64,000 bases of DNA from Podarcis melisellensis (lineage: Eukaryota). A program made the translations under genes and the position numbers. Under the pieces are notes generated by a model. It worked only from the letters and a program-made list of their open reading frames with translations. It was not told the origin of the DNA and searched no databases. The stretch is from assembly GCA_964234715.1 (NCBI GenBank), contig OZ174276.1. One strand, written 5' to 3'. Below, piece by piece: positions 15,579 to 62,317 of this stretch. Each line of letters opens with the position of its first letter. The first letter of the stretch is position 1.

Positions 15579-15706
15579 TTATGCTGACTGCTCATCTGAG
15601 TGTCTTGAGGGAATCGTCATTCGTAGCTCAATGGTTTCTCTGTCATGCATTCCAGGCTCTTCCGTGATCCGCAAATGGGTTGTGGATTTGTCCCCTGCAG
15701 ACTTAG
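15579..15706 (-). CDS. QRICH2: QRICH2 putative terminal coding exon 20
   Basis: ttctgtgttgcag|(A)KSAGDKSTTHLRITEEPGMHDRETIELRMTIPSRHSDEQSA-TAA; phase 1 compatible; AATAAA about 60 nt downstream. Poorly conserved, so less certain. Confidence 0.65.
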
Positions 15707-15834
15707 CTGCAACACAGAACAGCCGCCATAGACAGAATCATAGAATTGTAGAACTGGAATGGACTACAAGCCCAGATCTAATTATTATGAGTATAAGAAA
15801 CTGATTAACCAATATTTTATCCATTGGACTACAG

Positions 15835-31690: not shown

Positions 31691-33182
31691 CTGCACAGAA
31701 AGGGACAGAGAGAGTTCTGGAGAGAGCTGCATATTCAAGGCACTGCAACGCTACCATCCTGCAACGCTACCATCCTGGAAGCGGCACCGCTGCAAAGCTA
31801 GCACTGAAGCTCTGCCCCATTGAGTGAGTCACTGCCATTCAAAATATTGTTCAGCCCACCTTTCTGGTGCTCAAGGCAGCTTACGGCAGAAAAGTCGTGC
31901 ATCCATTTCAACACAAGCTGGGAAAATGGCATAGTCATTAATCAGTGCCTAAGTGGTAAAGGCCTAGATATGGAGGAGATACCCCGGGGGAGTGTTTCAA
32001 AAGGCGAGGTGCCACCACAAGGTAGACCCTGTGATGAGCGGGGGGAGGGGGAGAGACAGAGAAAGGAACAAATTGAAATATTTTGTTCCCCCTTTACCAA
32101 TTAAATGAAGCAAAGATTTAACTGAGGGTCATTTAACGCTTTCTGACTGCTGAAATGAGGTACTTTGAAAACAATATGAAAGACCATAAAAGCTATATTA
32201 AATAATTAATGGCTGGATGGCAAGATTAGCATACAAAAACGCATATTAACTTACACTGCATTGTTTTAGAGAGGGCGTGAGTTAGAACATTTAAGATAAT
32301 TGTATGGTGTGTAAAGAATGGAAATGTTCATATGTTTAAATTAAAATAAACTTAAAAGGGAAAGAAGAAAAAAGTGCAGGTTCTGAAGGCAGGTTAGCAG
32401 AGAAGAGCCTCAGATGACAATTGGTATGAACAGGCAGGTTTCTATAGGAGAAGGCATGCCTTTGGCCTAGGGGTGCTCAACTATTTCACTTGGCCTTTCA
32501 TTTTCAAGTGACCTGGTCTGATTTGCATTCCTGGACAGCAGATTAGAACACAATTATCCTCCACTTTTTGCACCCTTATAATTTTTGCAATATAGTTCTC
32601 AGGTAAAAGATAATAAAAATACTAAAATGCATTCAAAAATGTGTATTTAAGGACAAAGTTCATACACAAATATGTATTTTATGTGATCAAACACATTAAA
32701 CATTTTAAAAAATGCATTAAAAAGATTGATGCAGAAATGGGATAGAATGGGACCCACAAGTAAACACATGTAAAACACGCATTGGTTGACAATTAGACTG
32801 GCCTGTCCATCCCTACTTCAGACATCCTGTTTATAGAGATTTACTGGTAAAAGCTGACATTTCAAATTGTGTCCAGAAACAAACTAGAAGCTAGTATTTA
32901 GAGGCAGGAATCATGTGTATTCCTACCCTTCAGCCTACCCTGGCTCACCTGATTGGCAGGGTCAGGCACGAGCAATGAGACATGCATGGCTGGCTCACCA
33001 GCATAAACACTTACAGTAAGTGTTGGGAACAGGGCAGAAAGGGATGTGCTTCTGCATGAGTCACTGGGTACTCCCAGCCACATTCCACAGCACTGAACCG
33101 CAAACATGGGAAGCTCTCGGCACTTTGGGATGCCCTCATTGGCCTGGCTGTGAATCATGGGCAAGGCAAGAGCCTTGCTTAC

Positions 33183-33347
33183 CTTGGAGTCCATTTCAAT
33201 CAAGAGTTTGTCAAGCATCTTCTGCCAATCTTGTTCTTGCCCAGCCATCTTGTTCAACAGCTCCTGCATCATCTTATGCAACTGCTCCGTGGTGGCATCG
33301 AACTGGCTACGGCTGACCTTCGCAGCAAGGGCAGCCTTATCTGCTTT
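33183..33347 (-). CDS. QRICH2: QRICH2 exon 12
   Basis: ttttccag|KADKAALAAKVSRSQFDATTEQLHKMMQELLNKMAGQEQDWQKMLDKLLIEMDSK|gtaagc; 165 nt, phase 0/0. Confidence 0.95.
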
Positions 33348-33671
33348 CTGGAAAAGTAGGGGGAAAGATGGGGGCATATCCTTGGTCGGATCTGTATCGC
33401 AAAGAACACCCCCGCCCTTCCCATCAGTAGCTCTGAGTGTGCATGTCCAGAGAGCATCTCCCTCCAATCTATAAGGATGGCAAGCACCAGAATCCCCGTT
33501 CAAACTGCTAATGACTGCCCTGCAGGTTGGCTGCAGAGCTGGGAGCAGAATCCAGGCCCCATCTACTTCATACGCTAGCTCCCTCTGCAAGCAGAGCTTA
33601 TGCAGGAGCACCAAGCCATGGCTCGATGCGCATGGGATAACTGTGATGTGTTATCAAGTACAACTCCTCAC

Positions 33672-33746
33672 CACATCGATTTCCATCACAAGGCTGTCTT
33701 TGTCTGCTTTTACATTTTCTAGTCTCTCCAAGGACTTGAACAACAT
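33672..33746 (-). CDS. QRICH2: QRICH2 exon 11
   Basis: ctttacag|MLFKSLERLENVKADKDSLVMEIDV|gtgagg; 75 nt, phase 0/0. Confidence 0.93.
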
Positions 33747-33809
33747 CTGTAAAGAACACAAAGCAAAGTAATCAAAGGTGGTTACCCAGAGACTCACATT
33801 CCTACTCAG

Positions 33810-34354
33810 CAGGGCAGAGGAATCTGGTGCCCTTCAGATGTTTCCAACTTCATCTCCCATCAGTCCCAGGCAGCATGGCCTATGATCAGAGATGATCACT
33901 CAGAGACTTTGAGCGAGTGGAGAATGAAACTTATGGATTATGCAGAATTGGACAAAATGACTGGAAAAATTAGATATCAGAAAGATCACAAATTCATTGA
34001 GGACTGGGGAAAGTTTACGGAATATCTGAAAACTATATGTGATGAACAGACAACGCTAGTGGGTTTTAAAGAGGCTTTGTGATAATATAAGGTATATTGT
34101 AAGAATGGAACTGAGATGGAAGGTTAATTTCAAATCGGCAATATTACATAGAAAATGCGTAAAGATATGAAAAATGGATGATTGAGGGAGGTGCTGGTGG
34201 AAGTTCAAAAAATCGTAAATTTGTAAACACGGTTGTCAAAATTATTTGTAAAAGAAAACTTAATAAAAATTTATGGGGAAAAAAAAAGATCAGAGATGAT
34301 GGGATTTGTGTGTAGTCCAACATCATCTGGAAGGCCACAGAGTTCTTCATTCCC
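33810..34354. mobile_element. Palindromic hAT-type MITE interrupted by the truncated L1
   Basis: Rejoined halves give the cagatg..ctcccatcagtccc..gatgatggga..gtagtccaaca..tctgga pattern shared with 15835-15970. Confidence 0.7.
33897..34287 (+). mobile_element. 5'-truncated L1 (ORF2 C-terminus + 3'UTR + A tail)
   Basis: EWRMKLMDYAELDKMTGKIR..DWGKFTEYL aligns by eye with the end of ORF2 at 57170-57329; AATAAA and A tail; 13-bp TSD gatcagagatgat at 33884-33896 and 34288-34300. Confidence 0.9.
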
Positions 34355-35168
34355 ACTACACTTTTATTTAAAATTATATATATATATTCATTTACTAGCA
34401 CATGTTCTGCAAGGTCTCATTGCGTCCAAATACTGCAAATCACACAACTCTCATTCCAAAGTGAGCCATCTTGTGCTTCTATCTCTCGAGTGATACTGAT
34501 AACAGATTGTAGGCTAGTGTATTGACAAAGCATGCTTTAGGTTAACTAGCTCAACATTTTGGGAATCGATACTGGGGGCAGAGTGGGGGTGGGAGGACGC
34601 TCACTTGCCAAGAAGGGCAACAGGGTGATTTGATGGGGCCCCTGGCAACCCTACCAAAGTTTAGTGAACATCAGGTAGAACTCTTACCCACTTGTAAGAA
34701 AAAACAAAGTTGTTTTCAACAGCAGCAAGGAGCCAAAATACTGCACATCTTAGCATCACACCTTTTTCTTTGGACAATCTGGCTGGCAGCTACTTGGTGG
34801 CTTATTATACAGCTGGTTCTCCCATGAGGGGTCTGGTGGCAGGGAACATGATGGCCCCTGGAGAACAGGCTCCCCCCCCCCCGCCCGAATACCAAACATC
34901 TGCTATAAGAGGTGATTTGCTGATGCTGATGCTGATTGATTTGTAGCTGCTTGGACCAAATGCCAACAAACCCAGCTGGATATCCAGTACTGTTACCACT
35001 GCTATAGTCTCATGGCCTCAGTCACCTGCTTTGTCTCTCGACAGTAAACAGAGGGAGGAGAGCCAGCTGCTTCCCTCTGGAGGAAGCACCACCAAATCCT
35101 TGTGAAGCAACAACACTGGGAATGTCCCATGTCATTTGACCCTGTAACCTGGCGTCAAGATCACCTAC

Positions 35169-35291
35169 ACTGATCTCCTTCTGCTTCTGGCGATGATCTT
35201 CTACAAGAGTGCCTGCAGTGGCGTTCAGCTTCTCACAGTCATCCTGAACTTGCAGGATGGTGCTTTGGATCTGGTTGAGCATCTCTTCATC
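35169..35291 (-). CDS. QRICH2: QRICH2 exon 10 (start of DUF4795 region)
   Basis: caaccag|DEEMLNQIQSTILQVQDDCEKLNATAGTLVEDHRQKQKEIS|gtaggt; 123 nt, phase 0/0. Confidence 0.93.
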
Positions 35292-36129
35292 CTGGTTGCA
35301 AAAGCAACAAAGTAATGAAAGCCAACATTGACATGGGTCTCCTTAATTAAATCCCTCCCCAAGTGTGTTAATTCCCTTTCGTTTTGGTGCAATGCGTATT
35401 TTATCTACATTGGATCAGAACTACAGCCTGAAGATGACAGTACACCATCAAGCAAAAACTTTGTACTTAGGAGCAGACACCCATGGGTTCTGCCTTTGCA
35501 TGTGTCTCCTCTCTGGATGGAAACACGTGTGTTGTTCTCACGCCTGCCCCTAGTTATCATTGATGTTGCACTGTACTTCCATTCTGCCCCTAGGTGCTGA
35601 TATTAATGCACTTTCAGCATACAAAAGCAAGCACAAATCCTGGCACTTTGTTACAGAGCACAAAGAACAAAAAGATGCCATATGAGAAAACAGAATCACA
35701 AAAAAGCCATGGACATAACCATTATCTATGGTATGGTGGCTTGTTCAATCCTCCTTAATTCCTTGCTTATGTTACCTAGGACAAGAATCTCTCTATCCCA
35801 CTTTGGAGGATGGGAGAGGGATTCAGAGATCCCGTCTCTAAGGATGGGCAGGATAATAAATGATATGAATATATGCAGCTGCACCCATAATGCCATCTGA
35901 GGACAGCAGGTTGACTCATGCATTTGGAGAACCCTTCTACAATTCTGTAGCTTCTGCTTCCAAGCCTCAGTGTCCCGCAGCTTCCCACCACGTAACTCCC
36001 AAAATGAGCCTTCTTTAGGCCTTACCACTAAGTCTCAGATCAGGCCTCAGCATCCACACAGAGCCCCCTGAACTCCCCCCTCTGCCCTCCTCCTGGAAAC
36101 CTGAGGTCACGTTCTTGCGCCGGCCTTAC

Positions 36130-44237: not shown

Positions 44238-44610
44238 TATACAAGTAGGAATTAAAACATGGAAAGCTCCTGTTCCTGCCAAGCCTCCTTCCAGATTCTC
44301 CATTTAGCCTCCCTGCAGTGTGCCCACTGAACATGCTCATTCCTCATATGGATGGGTGACCTTTGACCCTCCAGACATTATGCCCATCATCACTGGCCAT
44401 ACTGTCCAAGAAATGCTGCCAGGAAACGTCCAAAAGGTTAGCTCTAACCCCCAAATCAACCCTCCAAACATTTGGGTGGGCTAACATTTTTAGATTTTCC
44501 TTCCCAGAAAAAAATGGTTGCCCAACCTGTTGGAAATTTGCCGAAGCAGGTTCCAGATATTTGCCATTTAAAACAGAAACCCAGGAAACCGATACACACG
44601 TGATACATAC

Positions 44611-46012
44611 GTGCATCTGTGAGGAAGTCTTGCAGCCTGCGGAGATCGGCATAGCCACACTTGAATTGATCTAGGAGGCTGATCTGGTCTCGCAGAGCAT
44701 AGTACAAGTCCGTCAGTTGAGCGAGAGACCGCAGGGCATCCACAGTCTCAGAGTAGCGGGCTGGGGCCAAAGTGGAGCCAGACTCGGACAGTGGCATGGG
44801 GGTTGGGGCGGAGAGCAGCGGAGATGCTGGAGGTGTAGCTCCAAGGACAGGCCCAGGGGGCAATACAAGCTGCATTCCAGGCTGCGCACCAGCCCCCTCA
44901 CCAGGCTGGTAACCAAGAGGACTGGGCCAAAGAATCCCAGGCTGACCAAGGTACCCAGCTTGGGCATCAGGAGAACCAGGATAGAATGGAGGGGGTCCGG
45001 GAAATCCAGTTTGTATCCATGGAATGACAGCGCCTCCAGGGAAGGCTTCACCAGGCTGGGCGCCAAGGACTCCAGGATAGGCTCCGGGATAGGCTCCGGC
45101 ATAGGGTGCCAGGCCTCCAGGATAGGCTGTTTCATCTCCAGGTGCGCCAGGCTGGGCCCCAGGTGCTCCAGGTTGAGCCCCAGGTGCCCCAGGGTATGGA
45201 GCTTGGGCTCCAGGTGCACCAGGCTGGGCTCCAGGGGCTCCGGGATAGGCCCCGGGTGCCCCAGGGTAGGGTGCTTGGGTTCCAGGAGCACCAGGTTGGG
45301 CTCCGGGAGCACCAGGCTGGGCTCCAGGAGCCCCAGGATAGGCCCCAGGTGCTCCGGGATAGGGTGCTTGGGCTCCAGGGGCTCCGGGATAGGCCCCGGG
45401 TGCCCCAGGGTAGGGTGCTTGGGTTCCAGGAGCACCAGGCTGGGCTCCAGGAGCACCAGGCTGGGCTCCAGGAGCCCCAGGATAGGCCCCAGGAGCCCCA
45501 GGATAGGCCCCAGGTGCTCCAGGATAAGCCCCAGGTGCTCCAGGATAAGCCCCAGGTGCTCCAGGATAGGCTGCTTGGGCTCCAGGGGCTCCAGGATAGG
45601 CTCCAGGAGCACCAGGATAGGCCCCAGGTGCCCCAGGGTAGGGTGCTCCAGGATAGGCCCCGGGTGCCCCAGGATAGGGTGCTTGGGCTCCAGGGGCTCC
45701 GGGATAGGCCCCAGGAGCCCCAGGATAGGGTGCTTGGGCTCCAGGGGTTCCAGGATAGGCCCCAGGTGTCCCGGGATAGGGTGCCTGGGCCCCAGGAGCT
45801 CCTGGCTGGGTCCCTGGAGCACCAGCAACACCAGGCTGGCCTGGCTGAGCTCCAGGAATGCCTGCTGGAGCACTTCTTGGAGCCCCTGGTGCACCAGCCG
45901 GTGTTCCTTCTCTTCTGTGAGTGCCAGGCAAAGTTCCTGGAGATCCAGGAGTGGCTCTGCTTTCTGGAGAGGTCGCAGAATCAGTTGGGGAGTGTTGGAC
46001 TGGACTTGTCAC
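44611..46012 (-). CDS. QRICH2: QRICH2 exon 5 (large repeat exon, PGAPGAY/Q array)
   Basis: gtttctag|VTSPVQ...(PGAPGAY/Q)n...[49 protein letters not shown]+C|gtatgt; 1402 nt, phase 0/1. Confidence 0.9.
45060..45830 (-). repeat. Coding minisatellite, about 30 units of 21/30 nt ([24 protein letters not shown])
   Basis: Repeated ccaggatagg/ccccaggtgct units on + strand; translation in ORF 44456..46012. Confidence 0.95.
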
Positions 46013-47929
46013 CTAGAAACATATAGAGAGGAGTGACAAAAGCAGGGGTGGCTTTAGCTTGGGGCATTATCACAGGCATCTCACATCTTGCAGTTGACTT
46101 CATAAGAACATCTCATGTCCACTGTGTATCAGGAACACTACCACCACCTTCAACTGCAGGGCTGCACCAGAGCAAATCCAAGATGGCGGCCAGCACCCAT
46201 GCCACAACCCCTCAGCAAATCCAAGGGCGTTGTCACTTTGGGAGCAGGTCAAGTGGTTTTGTATCATCCTTAATTCAAACCAACAATACATGCTGCACAA
46301 TCTGAGGTGTTGACTGGATTGCCCTTAGTTGGGTAAGGCCACAAGAAATGGCCTTTTGAAGTTTCCTAAGTGTCCAAGGACAGCGTGGTGCAACAGGTAA
46401 GATTGCTGGATTCAGATCTAGGAGGCCTTTGATAGGAAATGGCATTCTGAGTGTCACAAGGCGCTGCTGAAATGTGAATGATCCAAGTCCGCCCCAGTGT
46501 CGCTACTGAAAAGCTCATAAACCCTCCTTTGTATAGGAGCAGCAGCTGGGCAATTTCATTCATAAGCTTCAGTGCTTCTCCTTTGTCCACAATGGGAGTT
46601 AACTGTGGTTAACTCACTGATGAGAGGAAGACAATCTGCATGTGCTCAGAGGCAACCTTTCATTACTATTACTTGCCATGTTCAAGGGGTCTAGGCTGGT
46701 ATTGAAAATAAAGACTAGAACTGAATGGCATAAACCAGTCCTTTCCCCTCAAATACTTGAATCCCTAGCCTGTATCCCTCTGGTTCTGCAGTTGTTAGCT
46801 TATGCTACCTCTGTCCAAGATCTACAGGGAAATTATGCAGGAATGCATAAGAGCCATCATACACTCAGTCAGAACTACTTTTTGTTCCTGAAATATTATT
46901 GCTGCTCAGATCAAAAAGCAGAAACTGACACCTGATCCTACACTTAATAAGAAAAAGGAAAAAAGCAGGAGCCCATGGATTACAGCTGATTCTCCATCAT
47001 GAAGACTTGCTTTTAGACATAGAAACATCCTGAAAAGTAACACTCTGCTTCACTCAATTATACCATGTTGACTGAGAGACTGGAAAGACTCACTCATGGA
47101 ATCAGAGTACATATAAACCAAGAGGGAATATTTCACTGCAGTGAATTCCTTCTATTGAGATTCTGATGTAGAACAAAGAATTACACTGGCCAGAAACAAT
47201 TTCTATGCACATTTCAGAATAGACCAACCAAGTGCTGATTTTCCCAAAAGGTTAGAAAGCAAGTAGCTGGGTAAATTTTCTAGAATTCCTGCTATTGTAC
47301 CTTTGTCAGGAATCCTAAATATTTCATTTTGCTGCTCACTGAATTCTTTTAAGTCTGGAGGTAAGAAATGGCTGGGCCCAGAGCCCAAAGCCTGGCCTCA
47401 AACCAATCATTAAGCCATGGAAAGATGCTACAGTAAAGTGGTATCTTTTTTAGATCTGTACTTTGCACATGCACAAATGATCTACAGTAATGAATCTATC
47501 ATACCACTTTAAAACAGTTCATTATTTTGTGGAAACTGGCTATATATCCAAATGCGGGCATTTAACACGCATGCAAGTTTTGCCCTATCTGGCCTTATGG
47601 GACACTAGCTGCTCTATGACTCTATGGAAATGTGAAATTAATGATGCTTACAACAATTCTAAATGGGTGCTTTGGAGCTGCACTGTTTTAAATGTTCTTC
47701 AGGGGCCGAAACAATAGCCCTGAGGTGTTCTCACATTGTTGTTTAGGTGCTACATTGCTTTTCTCTTTCTCAAACTCCTGCATGCCTTTGCTCTCAAGTG
47801 AAAGAAATGCAAACTTGCATAGTCTTTATAACACTGCAACACGGTTATGCTCAGGACACAGATTTTTCTTCAAGATCCAGGAAATGCAGTATGCACAGGA
47901 GAACCAAGTGCAAATCAAAACAACAAAGA

Positions 47930-49797: not shown

Positions 49798-49911
49798 AGG
49801 AGATGGGCTCCTCTTCCCTTTCACAAGGACATCCTCTAGAACGTCCCACCGCACCATATTGCTCATCTCCTCTGGGGAAGGAAACTGGCTCAGCCTCTTC
49901 TCTAAGTCTTT
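49798..49911 (-). CDS. QRICH2: QRICH2 exon 4
   Basis: tttgtctgtag|KDLEKRLSQFPSPEEMSNMVRWDVLEDVLVKGKRSPSP|gtgagt; 114 nt, phase 0/0; EE..MV.W..LE motif. Confidence 0.88.
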
Positions 49912-51461: not shown

Positions 51462-52483
51462 CTAGAATACAAAAAGAGATACAATATCAGTGAAAGGAAT
51501 GAATGAATGCATGCATGGACTCCTCTAAATATCAGCCTAAATATAATTTCCAACTGACAAGAAGCTACCATGTGTTTCCTAATGTCTCTGACTGCCAAAG
51601 ACAGAAAACATAGGAAACCTATTTTCAGGTCTTACAGAGCCCATTCCTACTTTACTCTAAGTAGCCTACGCTGGAGAGGAGCTGTTTCCCCAGGATAAAC
51701 TACATCCAAGAGAGGAAAAGAGGGAACAGCATCAATATAGCCCCCCAAAAGCTCACCACCTACTGCAAGGTGGTAGGATAGAACATATTGAGCAAGGGCA
51801 AGGGGGACCTCCAACAATTTTTTGATGCCCAATATGTTTTAACCATTCGCTTTGCTGCAGAGGCAACAATATTTTTCTAAACTTCAGTATAAGAAAGTCA
51901 ACTATCTTCAAGCAGGTACAAACTCTTTATCTTGAAATTCAGATATTATTGCCTTTGAAAGAGTGCTGATGCACAGGAACACCTTAGGCGTCTAAAATAG
52001 GGCTACCATACATCTGGGATTTAAAAGGCAGAATTGACATCCAGGGGGATTTCTGAAAGGCGGCGCTTTGTTCTGGCAAGTCATTAAAAAAAGATTGCGT
52101 TGAGGACCTTGGTGAACTGAATCTCCGAGACGCTGTATTAGCAAAGCGTGGGTGGGAACTCCGTCCCCCTTTGAACCAACACATACTAAGGCGTCGTCGT
52201 GGGGCTATTATATCGCACCTTCACACGAGCCCCCCAACCCCCCCTAGTGGGTGGGAGCGCCCCCCTTCTGGTGCCTCTTCTGGGTTTTTCCTACTGCCTC
52301 TGGGTCTTTTGCCCACGGCTCTCCCCTGGTCGCAAACCAGTCCCCGCCCCCGCTACCCCCTTTTTTTTTTTCTCTTCCTAACTCTTATCTCCCCTACCCC
52401 TTTATTGTATTTGACTACCACGGAAACAAACCACGCAGAATTGTAAGAACAAGAGTGTAAGCCCCACAGGGAGAGACCTAGTA

Positions 52484-53524
52484 ATGTGGGGGAGGGACGG
52501 GAAAAGAGGAGGGGGGACTCAAGGGGATAGGAGACTATCAAAACAAGAAGAAATAAGAGACTTGGAGAGCCTTTGGGCAAGAATTAAGGAGGAATTTAAG
52601 CAAAATGAATTACATATGGAAAGTAAATTGGAAGAAATGCAGGGGATGATTGACAAAAAAATAGAAGGTGCAGTAGGAGAACTCTCAATTAAGATCCAAG
52701 AGTTATCCACCAAATCCAAAATAATTGAGGACTCTAACAAAAGAATGCAGAAAGAGATGAGGGAACAGAAAAAAGAATCAGTAAGGATGAAGGAAGATCT
52801 GAGAGAATTAAATAGAACACAAGAAAAGATTTGGGATAACTTAGCCATGACAGAACTGAGACAAAAACAACTACACCTAAAATTTAGGGGAGTGGAAGAG
52901 GAAAGGAATGAGGACATAAAAGGAAAGATGGCTAAGGAATTATCAAAGTGGCTGGGATTAAGAGAAGATGAGGTGACCCAAACTATTGAAAATGCATTTA
53001 GAATTAAAACGAGACCTCAACACTTGAAGCCAAATAAATTCCTGGGTGACTGTCTAGTGATCTTCAATTCAATGGAAATGAAAAATTTGATCCTAAAAAC
53101 AAGCTATCGAAATAAACTGAAAATCGGTGGGAGGCCCATCATTATCTATAAAGAAATACCGACAAGACTGCTACGTAAAAGAGAGGGGTTTAGGCAAGTG
53201 GTAGGGGTCTTAAAAAGAAATGACATACAGTATAGATGGGAATTCCCTGAAGGAATCACCTTTTTCTACAAAGATAAAAAGTTTAGGTTACTGGATCCTC
53301 AAGAAGCTGAGAAATTTTTGAGAAGATATGAGAAGGAATTGGGCAGGATAGAGAACAGGCCAATGGAGGTGGAGCTGGATGAGAAACAGGAGAGATGGAG
53401 GGGGAGAGGGCCGGGAAAGGAAGGAAGAGACGCTGAGGAAGAAAATGAGGAGAGTGATGCCGCGGTGGGAGAAGAGGCGGCAGGAGAGGAGGAGGTCCTA
53501 GGGAACAAGGACTCTAGATTTTAA
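52484..53524 (+). CDS. L1 ORF1p (coiled coil + RRM + CTD, acidic tail), 346 aa
   Basis: ATG start; E/K-rich coiled coil; RQKQLHLKFRGVEE resembles the L1 RRxNIRIxGxPE motif; YRWEFPEGITF resembles the YPAKL region; position upstream of ORF2. Confidence 0.92.
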   Translation: MWGRDGKRGGGTQGDRRLSKQEEIRDLESLWARIKEEFKQNELHMESKLEEMQGMIDKKIEGAVGELSIKIQELSTKSKIIEDSNKRMQKEMREQKKESVRMKEDLRELNRTQEKIWDNLAMTELRQKQLHLKFRGVEEERNEDIKGKMAKELSKWLGLREDEVTQTIENAFRIKTRPQHLKPNKFLGDCLVIFNSMEMKNLILKTSYRNKLKIGGRPIIIYKEIPTRLLRKREGFRQVVGVLKRNDIQYRWEFPEGITFFYKDKKFRLLDPQEAEKFLRRYEKELGRIENRPMEVELDEKQERWRGRGPGKEGRDAEEENEESDAAVGEEAAGEEEVLGNKDSRF

Positions 53525-53570
53525 ACTTGTAAAACTGAACTGAGTGCTTAATACACTTAAGAGTTAAACA

Positions 53571-56500
53571 ATAGCCGTTACACTGAAGCTCTTATCCTGG
53601 AATGTGAATGGGTTGAACGAAAAATTGAAAAGGAATAAAATTGAGAAAGCTTTAAAAAATAAGAACTATGATGTAATCTGTTTCCAAGAGACGCACATAG
53701 CAAAAAAACATAGACATATCCTAGTAAATAAGAAGTTAGGGGTAGAATTTGTTAACTCGGGTATAAATAAGAAAAGGGGAGTAGTGATATATGTTAAAGA
53801 AAAGTGGGACCCGGTACTAATCTGTAAAGACGATGAGGGGAGAATACTAGGAATTCAACTTAACTGTCAGGGAGAGAAACTCAACGTGGTAACGGTTTAT
53901 GCCCCCAACACAAATAAAGCTGAATTTTTTGAGAAGTTGGAACAAATACTACTAGAATTGGAAGACCATAAATTAATCTTACTTGGGGATCTCAACGGGG
54001 TCCCAGCACCGGAATGGGATAGAAATGTAAAGAAGGGTAAAGTGAATCAAGGGAAGCTGCCAAAATCCTTTAGTAATTTGGTGGAGAATTTTGATTTAAT
54101 TGATATATGGAGGCACAAAAACCCTATAACAAGGCAATTTACTCATTTCTCAGAACCCCACCAGAGCTGGGGCAGAATAGACCAGATCTGGGTCTCAAGA
54201 ACAATTTTGACAAAAGTAAGGGAATGTGAAATACAACCCAGAACCTTATCAGATCACTGCCCAATAGCTTTGGAAATAAAAAAGGAAACATCAGGTCCGT
54301 ACAGGTGGAGGATGAATGAGTACCTCTTAGAAATCGAGGAGGTGATAGATAAAGCCAAAGCCACCCTCAAGAATTATTTTGATTTAAACTGGAATAAGGG
54401 TACGTCCCCTGACGTAGTCTGGGACGCCGGTAAAGCAGTCCTAAGAGGCCTCTTGATACAACAAAATAGCCATAGGAGAAAACTGAGAAACCAAAAGAAA
54501 GAAGAGATCCTTACCCAACTAAAAGATTGTGAAAAAAAATTAGCAATAAGACCAGGAGATGATAGACTTAAACAAACCTCCAGTATGCTGCAGGCACAAT
54601 ATTCCGCACTACTAAATCAAGAGGTAGAGTGGAAAATTAAATTCATGAAGCAGAAATATTTCGAATCGGCGAACAAATCTGGGAAGTTGCTGGCATGGCA
54701 GCTAAGGAGGAGGAAAAAGCAAAACGTGATAAATAAACTTATAGTAGAGGATAAGATAGTGGAAGAAACAACCGAAATAGAAAGAAGGTTTACCCAATTT
54801 TACGGAAAGTTGTATGAGAAGGGAGAAGAGGAAGAAGTAGAAATAGAAAAATACCTGACAGAGTGTGGAGGGATCCATGTAACGGATGAGGAAAAAAAAC
54901 ACCTAAATAAAAGTATTACAGTAGAAGAGGTGAGGGAAGCCATTAAGAGAATGAAAAACGGGAAGGCACCCGGCCCCGATGGATTAACTGCTAAATATTA
55001 TAAAATATTAGGAGATCATATAGCCCCAGTGCTCAGCGAGGTTATTAACAACATCCTCCAGGGAGGAAGGATTCCAGATTCATGGAGGGAGGCACATATT
55101 ACGTTAATACCAAAAACAGAAACAGAGAAAACGGATATAAGAAACTATAGACCAATTTCCCTGCTCAACAATGATTATAAGATCTTTGCAGATATTATGG
55201 CGAGCAGGCTTAAGAAGTACTTAATGAGAGCCATCCATAAAGACCAAGTGGGTTTTTTACCGAATAGGCAGTTAAAAGATAACGTCAGACACTTAGTGAA
55301 TATTATCGAATATCTGGATATGAAGATAGATATCCCGGCAGCATTAATTTTTATTGATGCTGAGAAAGCATTCGATAATGTTTCTTGGAACTTTTTGTTA
55401 CGGTGTATAAAAACAGTAGGAATAGAGGGCCCCTTTTTAGAAGGGATAAAGGCAATATACTCAGGGCAAAGGGCAAGGCTGATTATAAATGATAGCCTCT
55501 CCAGCCCTTTTACAATAGCGAAAGGCACAAGACAAGGCTGCCCGTTATCCCCCCTTCTCTTTATTATGGTTCTAGAGATATTGGCAAATAAAATAAGGGA
55601 GTCATCAAGAATAAAGGGGATAAAAGTCGGAGAGAAAGAGTACAAGCTAAAGGCATATGCCGATGACGTGGTGCTAACTTTAGAGGAACCAATGAACAGC
55701 GTTAGTAATACTGTAAAGATCTTAGAAGAATTTGGCAAATTGGCGGGGTTTAAATTAAACAAGGGGAAAACTAAAATTCTAGTGAAGAATTTAGATGAAG
55801 TGGCAAAGATCCAGTTGGAGCAAATGATCGGCATTAAAGTAGTAAAAAAAGTTAAGTACCTGGGAATATGGATATCGCCAAAGAATATAAACTTATTAGA
55901 AGATAATTACACCAAGGTCTGGCAAGAAATTAAGAGAGATCTGGACATTTGGAATAGGCTAAAACTGTCTTGGTCAGGAAGGATGGCTGCGATCAAAATG
56001 AGTATTTTACCAAAACTACTGTTTTTATTCCAGAATATCCCTATAATAAGAGGAACATCATGTTTTAAGACCTGGCAAAAAATTCTGACGAAATTCATAT
56101 GGCAGGGGAAAAGGGCCAGAATTAAATTCAAACTGCTGACGGATGCGAGAGAGAGGGGGGGCTTCGCAGTCCCAGATTTAAGGCTCTATTACGATGCTGC
56201 CTGCCTCTGTTGGATAAAAGACTGGGCGACTTTAAAAAACCCAGACCTACTGGACCTTGAAGGCTTTGATGCCAGGTTTGGCTGGCACGCTTATTTATGG
56301 CAAGATAAAGGTAAAGCCCACAAAAGCTTCTCAAATCATATTATCAGAGGCCCTCTACTAGAAGCCTGGAACAGAAATAAAAAAGTAATTGAAAGCGGTA
56401 CGCCTTGGTGGATCTCCCCAATAGATATTATAACGCTCAAAAAAACAAACCAAGAGGGGGAGAGATGGACGTATGAGGACCTCCTAGTCAAACTGGAGGG

Positions 56501-57329
56501 TGGATGGAAAATCAGACCTTATGAGGAGTTAAAAGGAAAACTAAACAGCTGGCTTCAATATCATCAGATTAATGCGTTGTGGCTCGAGCATAAAAAAACA
56601 GGGATAAGTGAAAAAAAATCGAAATATCAGGTAGAGATATTGGAATCTAATAGCAAACTCCTCTCTAAAATGTATAAACAATTGTTAAGCTGGGAAACCA
56701 GAGATGAGGCAGTCAAGGGGGTCATGGTTAAATGGGCCAGAGATCTGGGACATAATTTGGAACAGGAGAAATGGCAGAAACTATGGAAAAAGGGTATGAA
56801 GTTCTCGGCATGTGCTACTCTCCGAGAAAATCTAGAGAAGATGATGTACCGATGGTACATCACCCCGGCAAGTCTGGGGAAGATGTATAAAACCGGTGAT
56901 AGCACATGCTGGAGATGTAAAAACAAGGTGGGGAACTTCTTTCATATGTGGTGGACCTGTGAGGTGGTGAGAGGATTCTGGGACCAAATTTATGAGGAAC
57001 TAAAGAAAATTTTAAAATACAACTTCCCTAAGATACCGGAAGCGTTTCTTTTAGGAATGGTAGGAGAAGAGATTAAAAGAGAAGATGAAAACTTCTTCCA
57101 ATACGCCACGGCGGCGGCCAGGATCGCGTTGGCGCAGAATTGGAAAACATCTAACACCCCCACAGTTAAAGAATGGCAGACGAAACTATTCCAATATATA
57201 GAACTAGCGAGGCTGACACAAAGAATTAGATCTCAAAATAATACTAAATTAAAAAATGACTGGAGTAAATTTCTGGGCTATGTTGAAGTGACTTATGGAA
57301 TGTTGAAAATCTCAGTGGATGGAATTTAA
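53571..57329 (+). CDS. L1 ORF2p (APE endonuclease + reverse transcriptase + CCHC), about 1252 aa; non-ATG (ATA) start
   Basis: LKLLSWNVNG, CFQETH, GDLN, SDH (EN); KAPGPDG, YRPISLLN, DAEKAFD, GTRQGCPLSP, YADD (RT); CWRC..HMWWTC. Open from just after TAA 53565 to 57329 with no stop or frameshift. Confidence 0.95.
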   Translation: MAVTLKLLSWNVNGLNEKLKRNKIEKALKNKNYDVICFQETHIAKKHRHILVNKKLGVEFVNSGINKKRGVVIYVKEKWDPVLICKDDEGRILGIQLNCQGEKLNVVTVYAPNTNKAEFFEKLEQILLELEDHKLILLGDLNGVPAPEWDRNVKKGKVNQGKLPKSFSNLVENFDLIDIWRHKNPITRQFTHFSEPHQSWGRIDQIWVSRTILTKVRECEIQPRTLSDHCPIALEIKKETSGPYRWRMNEYLLEIEEVIDKAKATLKNYFDLNWNKGTSPDVVWDAGKAVLRGLLIQQNSHRRKLRNQKKEEILTQLKDCEKKLAIRPGDDRLKQTSSMLQAQYSALLNQEVEWKIKFMKQKYFESANKSGKLLAWQLRRRKKQNVINKLIVEDKIVEETTEIERRFTQFYGKLYEKGEEEEVEIEKYLTECGGIHVTDEEKKHLNKSITVEEVREAIKRMKNGKAPGPDGLTAKYYKILGDHIAPVLSEVINNILQGGRIPDSWREAHITLIPKTETEKTDIRNYRPISLLNNDYKIFADIMASRLKKYLMRAIHKDQVGFLPNRQLKDNVRHLVNIIEYLDMKIDIPAALIFIDAEKAFDNVSWNFLLRCIKTVGIEGPFLEGIKAIYSGQRARLIINDSLSSPFTIAKGTRQGCPLSPLLFIMVLEILANKIRESSRIKGIKVGEKEYKLKAYADDVVLTLEEPMNSVSNTVKILEEFGKLAGFKLNKGKTKILVKNLDEVAKIQLEQMIGIKVVKKVKYLGIWISPKNINLLEDNYTKVWQEIKRDLDIWNRLKLSWSGRMAAIKMSILPKLLFLFQNIPIIRGTSCFKTWQKILTKFIWQGKRARIKFKLLTDARERGGFAVPDLRLYYDAACLCWIKDWATLKNPDLLDLEGFDARFGWHAYLWQDKGKAHKSFSNHIIRGPLLEAWNRNKKVIESGTPWWISPIDIITLKKTNQEGERWTYEDLLVKLEGGWKIRPYEELKGKLNSWLQYHQINALWLEHKKTGISEKKSKYQVEILESNSKLLSKMYKQLLSWETRDEAVKGVMVKWARDLGHNLEQEKWQKLWKKGMKFSACATLRENLEKMMYRWYITPASLGKMYKTGDSTCWRCKNKVGNFFHMWWTCEVVRGFWDQIYEELKKILKYNFPKIPEAFLLGMVGEEIKREDENFFQYATAAARIALAQNWKTSNTPTVKEWQTKLFQYIELARLTQRIRSQNNTKLKNDWSKFLGYVEVTYGMLKISVDGI

Positions 57330-61567: not shown

Positions 61568-62317
61568 CTTGTTGATGCCCTCTTCGTTGGCTTCAACTTT
61601 CTTCTGCAACTGCATCGCTTGCCATAGATCGGCCACAGAGCCACTCCTGGCTTTATCCATCAAGTCGGTACCAGAAGGCAGCTTCTCTAGGCCAGACATT
61701 TGCTGTTCAAACCCTTTGACCCGCTTTCCCAACCCCTGCACTTTCCCCTGGACTCCCTGCACTTGATCTTGCATTCCTTGGACCTGATCTTCCACCCCTT
61801 GCACCTGATCTGCCATCCCTTGGAGGTTCGCCTGCAGCGCAAACATTTTATTTTCCAAGTCGTCAAGGCGAGATTCTATGTCTTTGTCTGAAACCCCCTT
61901 TTCCTTCCTGGGCCTGCCTTCTTTGCCTTCTTTGCCCTCCAGGCCTTCTTTGCCTTCCTTGCCCTCCAGGCCTTCTTTGCCTTCTTTGCCTTCCTTGCCC
62001 ACCAAGCCTTCCTTGCCTTCCTTGCCTGCCCTGCCTGCCTTGCCTTCCCGGCCCTCCTTGCCTGCCCTGCCATCCTTGCCCTTCAGTAACTCTTCATCGG
62101 ACAGTATCTCCCCAACCCCCGTCTCAATAGCCTCCGGCATGTCTGGCTTGGGTGGCGGGCCCCGATCCACCTTGACCTCCGCCATGGCATCCTGGATTTT
62201 GAGGTACCTGAGGATGGCATGGAGGAGGGTGTGGAGGGCATTGAAATTGACATGGCCAACCTCAGGAGTCCCTATGGAGATGTCCGCCAACTCGTACAAG
62301 GTGACTTTCAGAGACAT
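61568..62317 (-). CDS. QRICH2: QRICH2 coding exon 1 (250 codons; conserved N-terminus, Gly-X-Y repeat, heptads)
   Basis: gacATG start; MSLKVTLYELADISIGTPEVGHVNFNALHTLLHAIL...VADLWQAMQLQKKVEANEEGINK; donor AAG|gtatgt, phase 0. Confidence 0.92.
61700..61825 (-). repeat. Coding 21-nt heptad repeat (VQG.xDQ) x6
   Basis: LQGMADQ VQGVEDQ VQGMQDQ VQGVQGK VQGLGKR VKGFEQQ. Confidence 0.85.
61910..62080 (-). repeat. Coding 9-nt-unit repeat: 19 Gly-X-Y triplets (GKE/GRA/GLE)
   Basis: GKD GRA GKE GRE GKA GRA GKE GKE GLV GKE GKE GKE GLE GKE GKE GLE GKE GKE GRP. Confidence 0.9.

Follow-up and report, generated by a model that had tools for sequence, protein, structure and literature searches.

The window analysed here is a stretch of 64,000 nucleotides (nt) from the lizard Podarcis melisellensis (GenBank assembly GCA_964234715.1, contig OZ174276.1), and the element in question is a tandem array of proline-, glycine-, alanine- and tyrosine-rich units encoded on its minus strand by the fifth coding exon of the QRICH2 (glutamine-rich protein 2) gene. 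The array comprises 31 short units with evenly spaced tyrosines and without a single charged residue. Judged by its distribution, this central low-complexity domain did not arise by a recent local change: it is an old form, found throughout the squamates, of a repeat domain that evolves fast. The codon pattern indicates that it is translated in the frame reading PGAPGAY and that purifying selection acts on the peptide, while the DNA gains and loses whole 7- and 10-residue units. By analogy with the tail of galectin-3 (PMC7060198, PMC12979664), we lean towards the view that the array is a disordered aromatic sticker-spacer module through which QRICH2 would self-associate.

QRICH2 is required for formation of the sperm flagellum in man and mouse (PMC6347614). 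The gene in the window is identified as QRICH2, as a first-pass annotation made from the letters of the DNA had proposed, and as a Podarcis orthologue, because its exons match Podarcis gene models collinearly, DUF4795 is encoded downstream and more than 100 orthologues are so named. The exons were queried singly, without assembly into a spliced protein. The P. lilfordi QRICH2 maps by tblastn as ~20 collinear exons running from 62317 to 15582, the P. raffonei model is likewise collinear, and the whole coding sequence (~20 coding exons, 15582-62317) is contained in the window. Coding exon 1 encodes the QRICH2 N-terminal domain (LADLSIGTPE.G.VNFNALHTLLHA type); its identity is 98.4% to P. lilfordi (residues 1-250), 94.9% to P. 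raffonei and 89.9% to P. muralis, and it also aligns with QRICH2 of turtle, alligator, platypus, newt, coelacanth and gar. DUF4795 (PF16043), the C-terminal domain of QRICH2, is matched by Pfam in the downstream minus-strand exons with E-values of 4.1e-20 and 2.3e-8, and the large repeat exon closes, as expected of QRICH2, with a conserved RY.ETV.ALR helix that is kept in 15 sauropsids. Between the window and P. lilfordi, the intron adjoining the repeat exon shows 95.4% identity. Orthologues named glutamine-rich protein 2 range from gar to mammals. A word search with a conserved turtle segment finds proteins named QRICH2 in 21 squamate species and in many mammals, while a whole-library profile search with exon 1 is dominated by collagens through a Gly-X-Y run and holds ~20 true relatives among the 150 matches listed, those so named coming, among these matches, from turtle, alligator, platypus, marsupial, newt, frog, coelacanth and gar.

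The large repeat exon (coding exon 5; 44611..46012, minus strand) spans 1402 nt, that is, 467 codons and one base of a split codon. It is bounded by the acceptor ttctag/GTG (ag at 46014-46013, preceded by a pyrimidine tract) and the donor GCAC/gtatgt (gt at 44610-44609), and its ends (VTSPVQ... and ...DFLTDA) are the same residues as in published Podarcis, Lacerta and Zootoca QRICH2 models. The exon map agrees with the earlier placing of the array in coding exon 5. Four parts, all on the minus strand, can be distinguished. The N-terminal flank (residues 1-52; 45857..46012) is rich in Ser, Thr and Pro, bears a few charges (located at residues 11-46), is near-identical in five lacertid orthologues and merges into the array. 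The core array (residues 53-290; 45143..45856) holds 21 Tyr and zero charged residues in 238 residues (P 29%, A 27%, G 26%, Y 9% (8.8%), Q 8%). Its 31 units include PGAPGAY eleven times, PGAPGAQ seven times and eight decamers (one type in four copies, another in two), the remainder being single variants. The degenerate tail (residues 291-415; 44768..45142) has a high content of Pro and Gly, among which Tyr, Phe and Trp occur here and there together with a few acidic residues; it is conserved among lacertids and aligns collinearly by tblastn with a turtle fragment (P0002). The conserved helical segment (residues 416-467, ending DFLTDA; 44612..44767) matches two turtle fragments (P0002, P0019), has many columns invariant in 15 sauropsid sequences and anchors exon 5 across vertebrates.

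The run free of D, E, K and R extends over 246 residues (47-292), beyond the core array on both sides. The first-pass annotation had described about 30 units with regular Tyr over about 230 uncharged residues, which agrees with the 31 units, the even Tyr and this run on the minus strand (a strand it had left unstated). The range it assigned, 45060-45830, covers the array for the most part, but overruns into the tail (D293, E294) and omits the first three units. Spacing from Tyr to Tyr is mostly 7 or 10 residues, and more even than in shuffled sequences of identical composition, none of 2000 of which reached the same evenness (z = -2.5). At the level of DNA, Tandem Repeats Finder reports nested and overlapping arrays at 45070-45802 with periods of 21, 30, 51, 72 and 144 nt, including 7.0 copies of a 21-nt period at 45426-45571 (93% matches) and a higher-order repeat at 45225..45647 (minus strand), in which a 144-nt (48-residue) six-unit block recurs in 3.0 copies (84% matches, score 566). 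The local content of guanine and cytosine is 0.59 at the array, against ~0.44 in the surroundings.

Reading frame and selection on the array

The PGAPGAY frame, read downwards from 46012, is open for 467 codons. Such openness is no proof by itself, since five frames are open across the repeat: at 44456-46036, five of the six frames (three minus, two plus) stay open for 280-518 codons. Gene callers based on open reading frames could report spurious proteins there, for example Leu/Pro/Glu-rich or Arg/Ser/Gly-rich translations.

The frame test was carried out on exon 5 of P. lilfordi (L002) and Zootoca vivipara (L003), aligned with the window as DNA with all protein information excluded. Mismatches in the array at codon positions 1/2/3 number 8/0/36 against P. 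lilfordi (p 2.6e-11) and 12/6/71 against Zootoca (p 1.3e-19). All alignment gaps are multiples of 3 (30, 9, 9, 36, 21, 30 and 12 against P. lilfordi; similar in Zootoca). When the array is shifted against itself by 21, 30, 51, 72 and 144 nt, an excess of third-position mismatches results throughout (4/1/21 at 144), and the ratio of nonsynonymous to synonymous differences per site (pN/pS) in the array is ~0.11 by a codon-based count, which is approximate. Furthermore, both conserved flanks of exon 5 share the PGAPGAY open frame, and published lacertid models have the same boundaries and frame. Taken together, the third-position excess, the gaps in multiples of 3, the flanks and the agreement of the models show the array to be coding in this frame. 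The exon length of 467 residues compares with 444, 429 and 445 in three other Podarcis species, the differences consisting of whole-unit insertions and deletions only.

The repeat exon across vertebrates and its likeness to galectin-3

Homologous segments were excised from orthologues by means of the exon-4 and exon-5 anchors of the window, the mammalian repeats being checked in non-human mammals. A Tyr array is present in all 27 squamate models with a delimitable exon-5 segment (21 species), one cobra model excepted; the sample comprises five geckos, one skink, five lacertids, one amphisbaenian, one anguid, five iguanians and five snakes. The top heptads in these arrays are YPGAPGA and PGAPGAQ, the charge-free runs extend over 108-369 residues with 5-11% Tyr, and the total aromatic content is ~6-11%. 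Every isoform set examined (six squamate species) retains the array. Aromatic residues are spaced more evenly than in shuffles in the window, in each of the ten further squamates tested (z -2.0 to -3.4) and in the Phe array of the turtle Gopherus. In the vipers (P0294, Crotalus; P0299, Protobothrops) the arrays hold ~5% Phe and ~5% Tyr, while other squamates are mostly near Tyr-only and the total is unchanged. The exceptional cobra model is a hypothetical protein of Naja naja (P0296), in which residues 298-384 are array-free and the start of the exon is read in a different frame (TQVQSNT..., equivalent to QVQSNTPQL... in the second minus frame of the window); it is probably an annotation artefact, enabled by the all-open frames.

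Outside the squamates, the homologous exon carries other repeats. Testudinoid turtles (Gopherus) have PGFPGAQPGAQ with 8% evenly spaced Phe, and the trionychian (soft-shelled and pig-nosed) turtles have PGAQ-type units with few aromatics. Alligator has PPGAW-containing 14-mers with some Glu, ostrich and rhea have GAQPGSPGTGTTVT with zero aromatics, the newt has PGTAGTA and the coelacanth QQVGQAPGQFPA. Placental mammals carry charged QPG decamers such as DQHGLVQPGA (elephant) and LVQPGAAQPG (cat), which agrees with the earlier statement that mammals have Gln-rich decamers in the equivalent exon; the 'Glutenin_hmw' domain of QRICH2 is described as confined to mammals (PMC11006759). The comparison of exon 5 among squamates, birds, turtles and mammals that the first-pass annotation had suggested thus finds a Tyr array common to squamates and different repeats in other lineages.

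This distribution bears on three proposals made with the first description of the array. Lineage-specific repeat turnover is supported by whole-unit insertions and deletions between Podarcis species, but the array itself is squamate-wide and old. That the QRICH2 repeat domain had been 'replaced' is overstated, as every lineage has some P/G/A/Q repeat at that place and a QPG(A) core is common to the units of turtles and mammals. A link to ectothermy or temperature finds no support, ectothermic turtles, alligator, newt and frog being without the Tyr array. On the simpler reading, the domain would have diverged in place rather than been swapped in, because the QPG(A) core recurs, the flanks are common and the degenerate tail can be aligned with that of turtle. 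A targeted but poorly framed literature search found no description of the squamate array; its sequences are already public as predicted models and, as far as found, undescribed.

A word search with exon 5 (candidates of 257-817 residues) returns almost only sauropsid galectin-3, matched in the N-terminal tail at 60-90% identity, the best tail matches covering 26% of the query at identities of up to 86%; the same search also yields two turtle QRICH2 fragments. The likeness to galectin-3 and elastin that had been proposed therefore stands in its first half, galectin-3 tails being the closest database matches, but fails in its second, no VPGXG-type elastin units being present. Galectin-3-like sequences have been delimited as disordered over more than 75 residues, with >8% aromatic residues, <3% Asp+Glu and repeated aromatic motifs (PMC12979664). 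The array falls within these bounds of composition, with 238 residues, 8.8% Tyr, 0% Asp/Glu, 21 [YFW]PG motifs in the charge-free run and low values of the predicted local distance difference test (pLDDT). The possibility that exon 5 belongs to a galectin-3 gene was rejected, as the exon has no match to Gal-bind_lectin (PF00337) and the downstream exons are those of QRICH2.

The DNA of the two genes is less alike than the peptides. The four PGAPGAY units of LGALS3 in P. raffonei (L001, 8972-9394) read CCA GGR GCM CCY GGC GCA TAY, and the eleven of QRICH2 in the window read CCT GGR GCA CCT GGG GCC TAT; there is no common allele at two of the seven silent sites, and the DNA identity of 70-80% is little above the minimum for identical peptides. 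Common descent of the repeat DNA with LGALS3 was rejected on this silent-site signature, unlike that of Podarcis LGALS3. Because the silent-site signatures differ, and because the PGAPGAY of turtles and birds occurs in their galectin-3 but is absent from their QRICH2, the likeness is judged to be convergent, or too old for tracing.

Explanations for the array

In the explanation that we favour, the evenly spaced tyrosines would make many weak aromatic contacts, while the Pro/Gly/Ala spacers would keep the chain disordered and non-aggregating. From its place after the N-terminal domain and ahead of the coiled-coil/DUF4795 part, the array would promote self-association of QRICH2, or its co-assembly with flagellar partners, during assembly of the sperm tail, and it would fill in squamates a role presumably held by differently composed repeats in other vertebrates. 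That the galectin-3 tail self-associates through its aromatic residues, as the first-pass annotation had stated, is published, as is the phase separation that they drive (PMC7060198). In galectin tails, the strength of association is set by repeat number and not by aromatic type (PMC12979664), and repeat number may likewise tune the association of QRICH2. In the AlphaFold2 prediction, made from 15 aligned sauropsid sequences, pLDDT in blocks of ten residues is ~41-53 for the core array and 30-42 for the degenerate tail, with no secondary structure in either and helices only at residues 416-466 (pLDDT ~66); the core array is thus predicted to be disordered. We further put forward, tentatively, that squamate QRICH2 evolved the PGAPGAY sticker-spacer heptad of galectin-3 independently and may have kept it under selection since early squamates, while sister lineages have Phe, Trp or no aromatic residue in its place.

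Several points weigh against the sticker-spacer module. The QRICH2 repeat of ratites is long yet aromatic-free and that of trionychian turtles has few aromatics, so that aromatic stickers are not generally required in QRICH2. The Tyr density of the array (8.8%) is below that of classic phase-separating domains, and low pLDDT is expected of any repeat and hence is weak evidence of disorder. The repeat alignment mixes orthologous and paralogous units, which inflates the pS of the array (0.26-0.34) and leaves pN/pS approximate. Moreover, inclusion of exon 5 rests on predicted gene models together with the selection signature.

Comparisons with other repeat and motif classes gave mostly negative results. 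No Pfam family, Collagen included, is matched in exon 5. A collagen triple helix was rejected, the longest Gly-X-Y run being four triplets and the spacing between glycines being 3 (30 times), 4 (21 times) or 7 (8 times). The sole notable match among solved structures, a recombinant collagen (PDB 8zxl), is compositional and requires a gap at each Tyr. Regular expressions for the elastin and resilin units VPGXG, GVGVP, YGAP and SYG have zero matches and there are no Lys-Ala cross-linking domains, on which grounds both families were rejected. The earlier suggestion of partners of the ALIX/TSG101 type is not borne out by the motifs, defined after PMC3397542 and PMC4346919. No P[ST]AP occurs in exon 5, and the array has no regular-expression match to P[ST]AP, PPxY, ALG-2 type 1 (PxYPx4YP), ALG-2 type 2 (PxPGF) or the SH3 classes. 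The two ALIX-type YPxL/YPxxL-like matches (residues 297 and 312) lie in the degenerate tail only, and YP pairs are spaced by 5 residues, not by the 4 of ALG-2. The array therefore does not qualify as a docking region for the endosomal sorting complexes required for transport (ESCRT) and ALG-2 (TSG101, ALIX, ALG-2).

Among the alternatives, the main rival is a passive spacer, in which exon 5 would supply a long, flexible and soluble linker from the N-terminal domain to the coiled-coil/DUF4795 part, the tyrosines, of no specific role, being a by-product of the amplification of founder units in which Tyr was present by chance. The differences of the repeat between vertebrate lineages, with aromatic-free forms in ratites (GAQPGSPGTGTTVT) and newt (PGTAGTA), the range of squamate segment lengths (344-781 residues) and the gain and loss of units between Podarcis species are all as such a linker would have them. 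It is nevertheless thought unlikely, though well worth keeping in mind, as Tyr-bearing units persist in every squamate clade despite turnover, the squamate aromatic total is held at ~6-11% with Phe compensating in vipers, and replacement changes are ~10 times rarer than silent ones.

The remaining alternatives are minor. The YPGAPGA units might be partner motifs or substrates of tyrosine kinases, with phosphorylation switching flagellar interactions; the 12 overlapping YP-x5-YP motifs in exon 5 would suit such an array, as would mammalian QRICH2, which reportedly acts through the flagellar partners AKAP3, ROPN1 and CABYR. Since the array matches no Pro/Tyr motif class tested and lacks the charged or Ser/Thr context typical of kinase sites, this is improbable. 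An elastic network in the sperm tail, similar to resilin, elastin or glutenin and possibly cross-linked by dityrosine, is suggested by the richness in Pro, Gly and Tyr, as in resilin and high-molecular-weight glutenin, and by the label Glutenin_hmw that NCBI CDD gives to the mammalian QRICH2 domain (PMC6347614); it is very improbable, given the lack of elastin or resilin units, of Lys-Ala cross-linking domains and of any Pfam family, and given that QRICH2 is cytoplasmic with no evident N-terminal signal peptide, which makes oxidative cross-linking unlikely. Copying of the array from LGALS3 by exon shuffling or gene conversion would explain why PGAPGAY is identical in both and why galectin-3 tails are the best protein matches, but is scarcely credible in view of the two silent sites without a common allele, a DNA identity near the level enforced by the peptide, the confinement of PGAPGAY to galectin-3 in turtles and birds, and the related PGFPGAQ and PGAQPGAQ at the same place in turtle QRICH2, which fit evolution in place. 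Finally, exon 5 could be skipped, the array removed as an internal intron or another frame used, and the three minus and two plus frames open across the repeat, together with the Naja naja model (P0296) that starts the exon in another frame without the array, would allow for this; with third-position mismatches concentrated in the PGA frame only, both conserved flanks in that frame and the array kept in all isoform sets examined from the six squamate species, we give it next to no credence.

If the sticker-spacer module is indeed what drives a Tyr-dependent assembly of QRICH2 in the developing sperm tail, the gene would serve as a natural experiment in the tuning of intracellular assembly by the kind and number of aromatic residues, and would also illustrate how sperm-tail proteins diversify between lineages. 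A testable hypothesis follows for the QRICH2 repeat domain generally, namely multivalent weak self-association tuned by repeat number. Squamate exon 5 encodes a domain very different from that of mammals, equally large and, by its substitution pattern, selectively maintained. It would provide a second, independent disordered module of the PGAPGAY type and a natural series for studying the evolution of such modules; its chemistry matches that of the galectin-3 tail, in which aromatic-driven self-association is demonstrated. The known identity of the gene as QRICH2 is unchanged by the finding of the array.

The surrounding locus and known systems

Other exons of the gene, all on the minus strand, were located in the window. 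Coding exon 1 (61568..62317) matches P. lilfordi; besides the conserved N-terminal domain it encodes a charged, collagen-like Gly-X-Y run and a coiled coil. The run (61700-62080) is nearly Pro-free, of the GKEGKEGLE type, and scores above the curated cut-off of Pfam Collagen (E-value 9.8e-9); the coiled coil, of Q/V-rich heptads, follows it. Among the orthologues listed, the flag PF01391 is on Podarcis models only, and the Gly-X-Y insertion may be genus-specific. Coding exon 4 (49798..49911, ends approximate), directly upstream of the repeat exon, was placed by tblastn of P0282 residues 310-349 and of the turtle fragment P0019. The DUF4795 exons fall within 33135..35294 (35166-35294, 33672-33752 and 33135-33347, ends approximate; Pfam PF16043 and tblastn), and the last mapped coding exon is at 15582..15713 (tblastn of P0282 residues 1389-1432). 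Apart from the exons, a LINE-1-like element (52415-57326, plus strand) is situated in the intron that separates coding exon 1 from coding exon 2, on the strand opposite to QRICH2, with two long open frames of 369 and 1253 residues, the second of which starts with an endonuclease-like segment. Three turtle QRICH2 fragments (P0002, P0019 and P0094) are publicly labelled 'apelin receptor A-like' (Platysternon) or 'uncharacterized protein C16orf96 homolog' (Chelonoidis, Chelonia). One of these fragments shares a 90% cluster with a named QRICH2; 'C16orf96 homolog' is a legacy name, C16orf96 being a paralogue of QRICH2, and the fragments so called group with named QRICH2.

Comparison with known systems places the array among several repeat types. 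Like the Gly-X-Y repeat of collagen it is built from PGA triplets, but every second or third triplet is interrupted by Tyr or QAPY and the glycine spacing alternates between 3 and 4. Tyr-rich prion-like low-complexity domains such as those of FUS and hnRNPA1 present evenly patterned aromatic stickers on a disordered, nearly uncharged chain. The array resembles them in all these respects, the disorder being predicted; it differs in having Pro/Gly/Ala spacers instead of Gly/Ser/Gln/Asn, a lower aromatic density and no RNA-binding context. The repeat of placental QRICH2 shares the same exon, the same conserved flanks, the QPG(A) core and a quick turnover of tandem units, whereas its units bear Leu/Val, His, Asp, many charges and few Tyr and the lizard array has 8% Gln, zero charge and regular Tyr. 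In turtles and crocodilians, the repeats of QRICH2 are positional homologues in which the aromatic-plus-PG theme recurs, with Phe or Trp instead of Tyr and in shorter or charge-interrupted form. Compared with galectin-3, the QRICH2 array has neither a carbohydrate-recognition domain nor the conserved galectin N-terminal segment, is about twice as long as the tail, is interspersed with Gln-ending units and decamers, and belongs to an intracellular flagellar protein. Nevertheless, it has in common with the galectin-3 tail of sauropsids the identical heptad PGAPGAY, the lack of charge, ~9% evenly spaced aromatic residues, predicted disorder and evolution through changes in repeat number.

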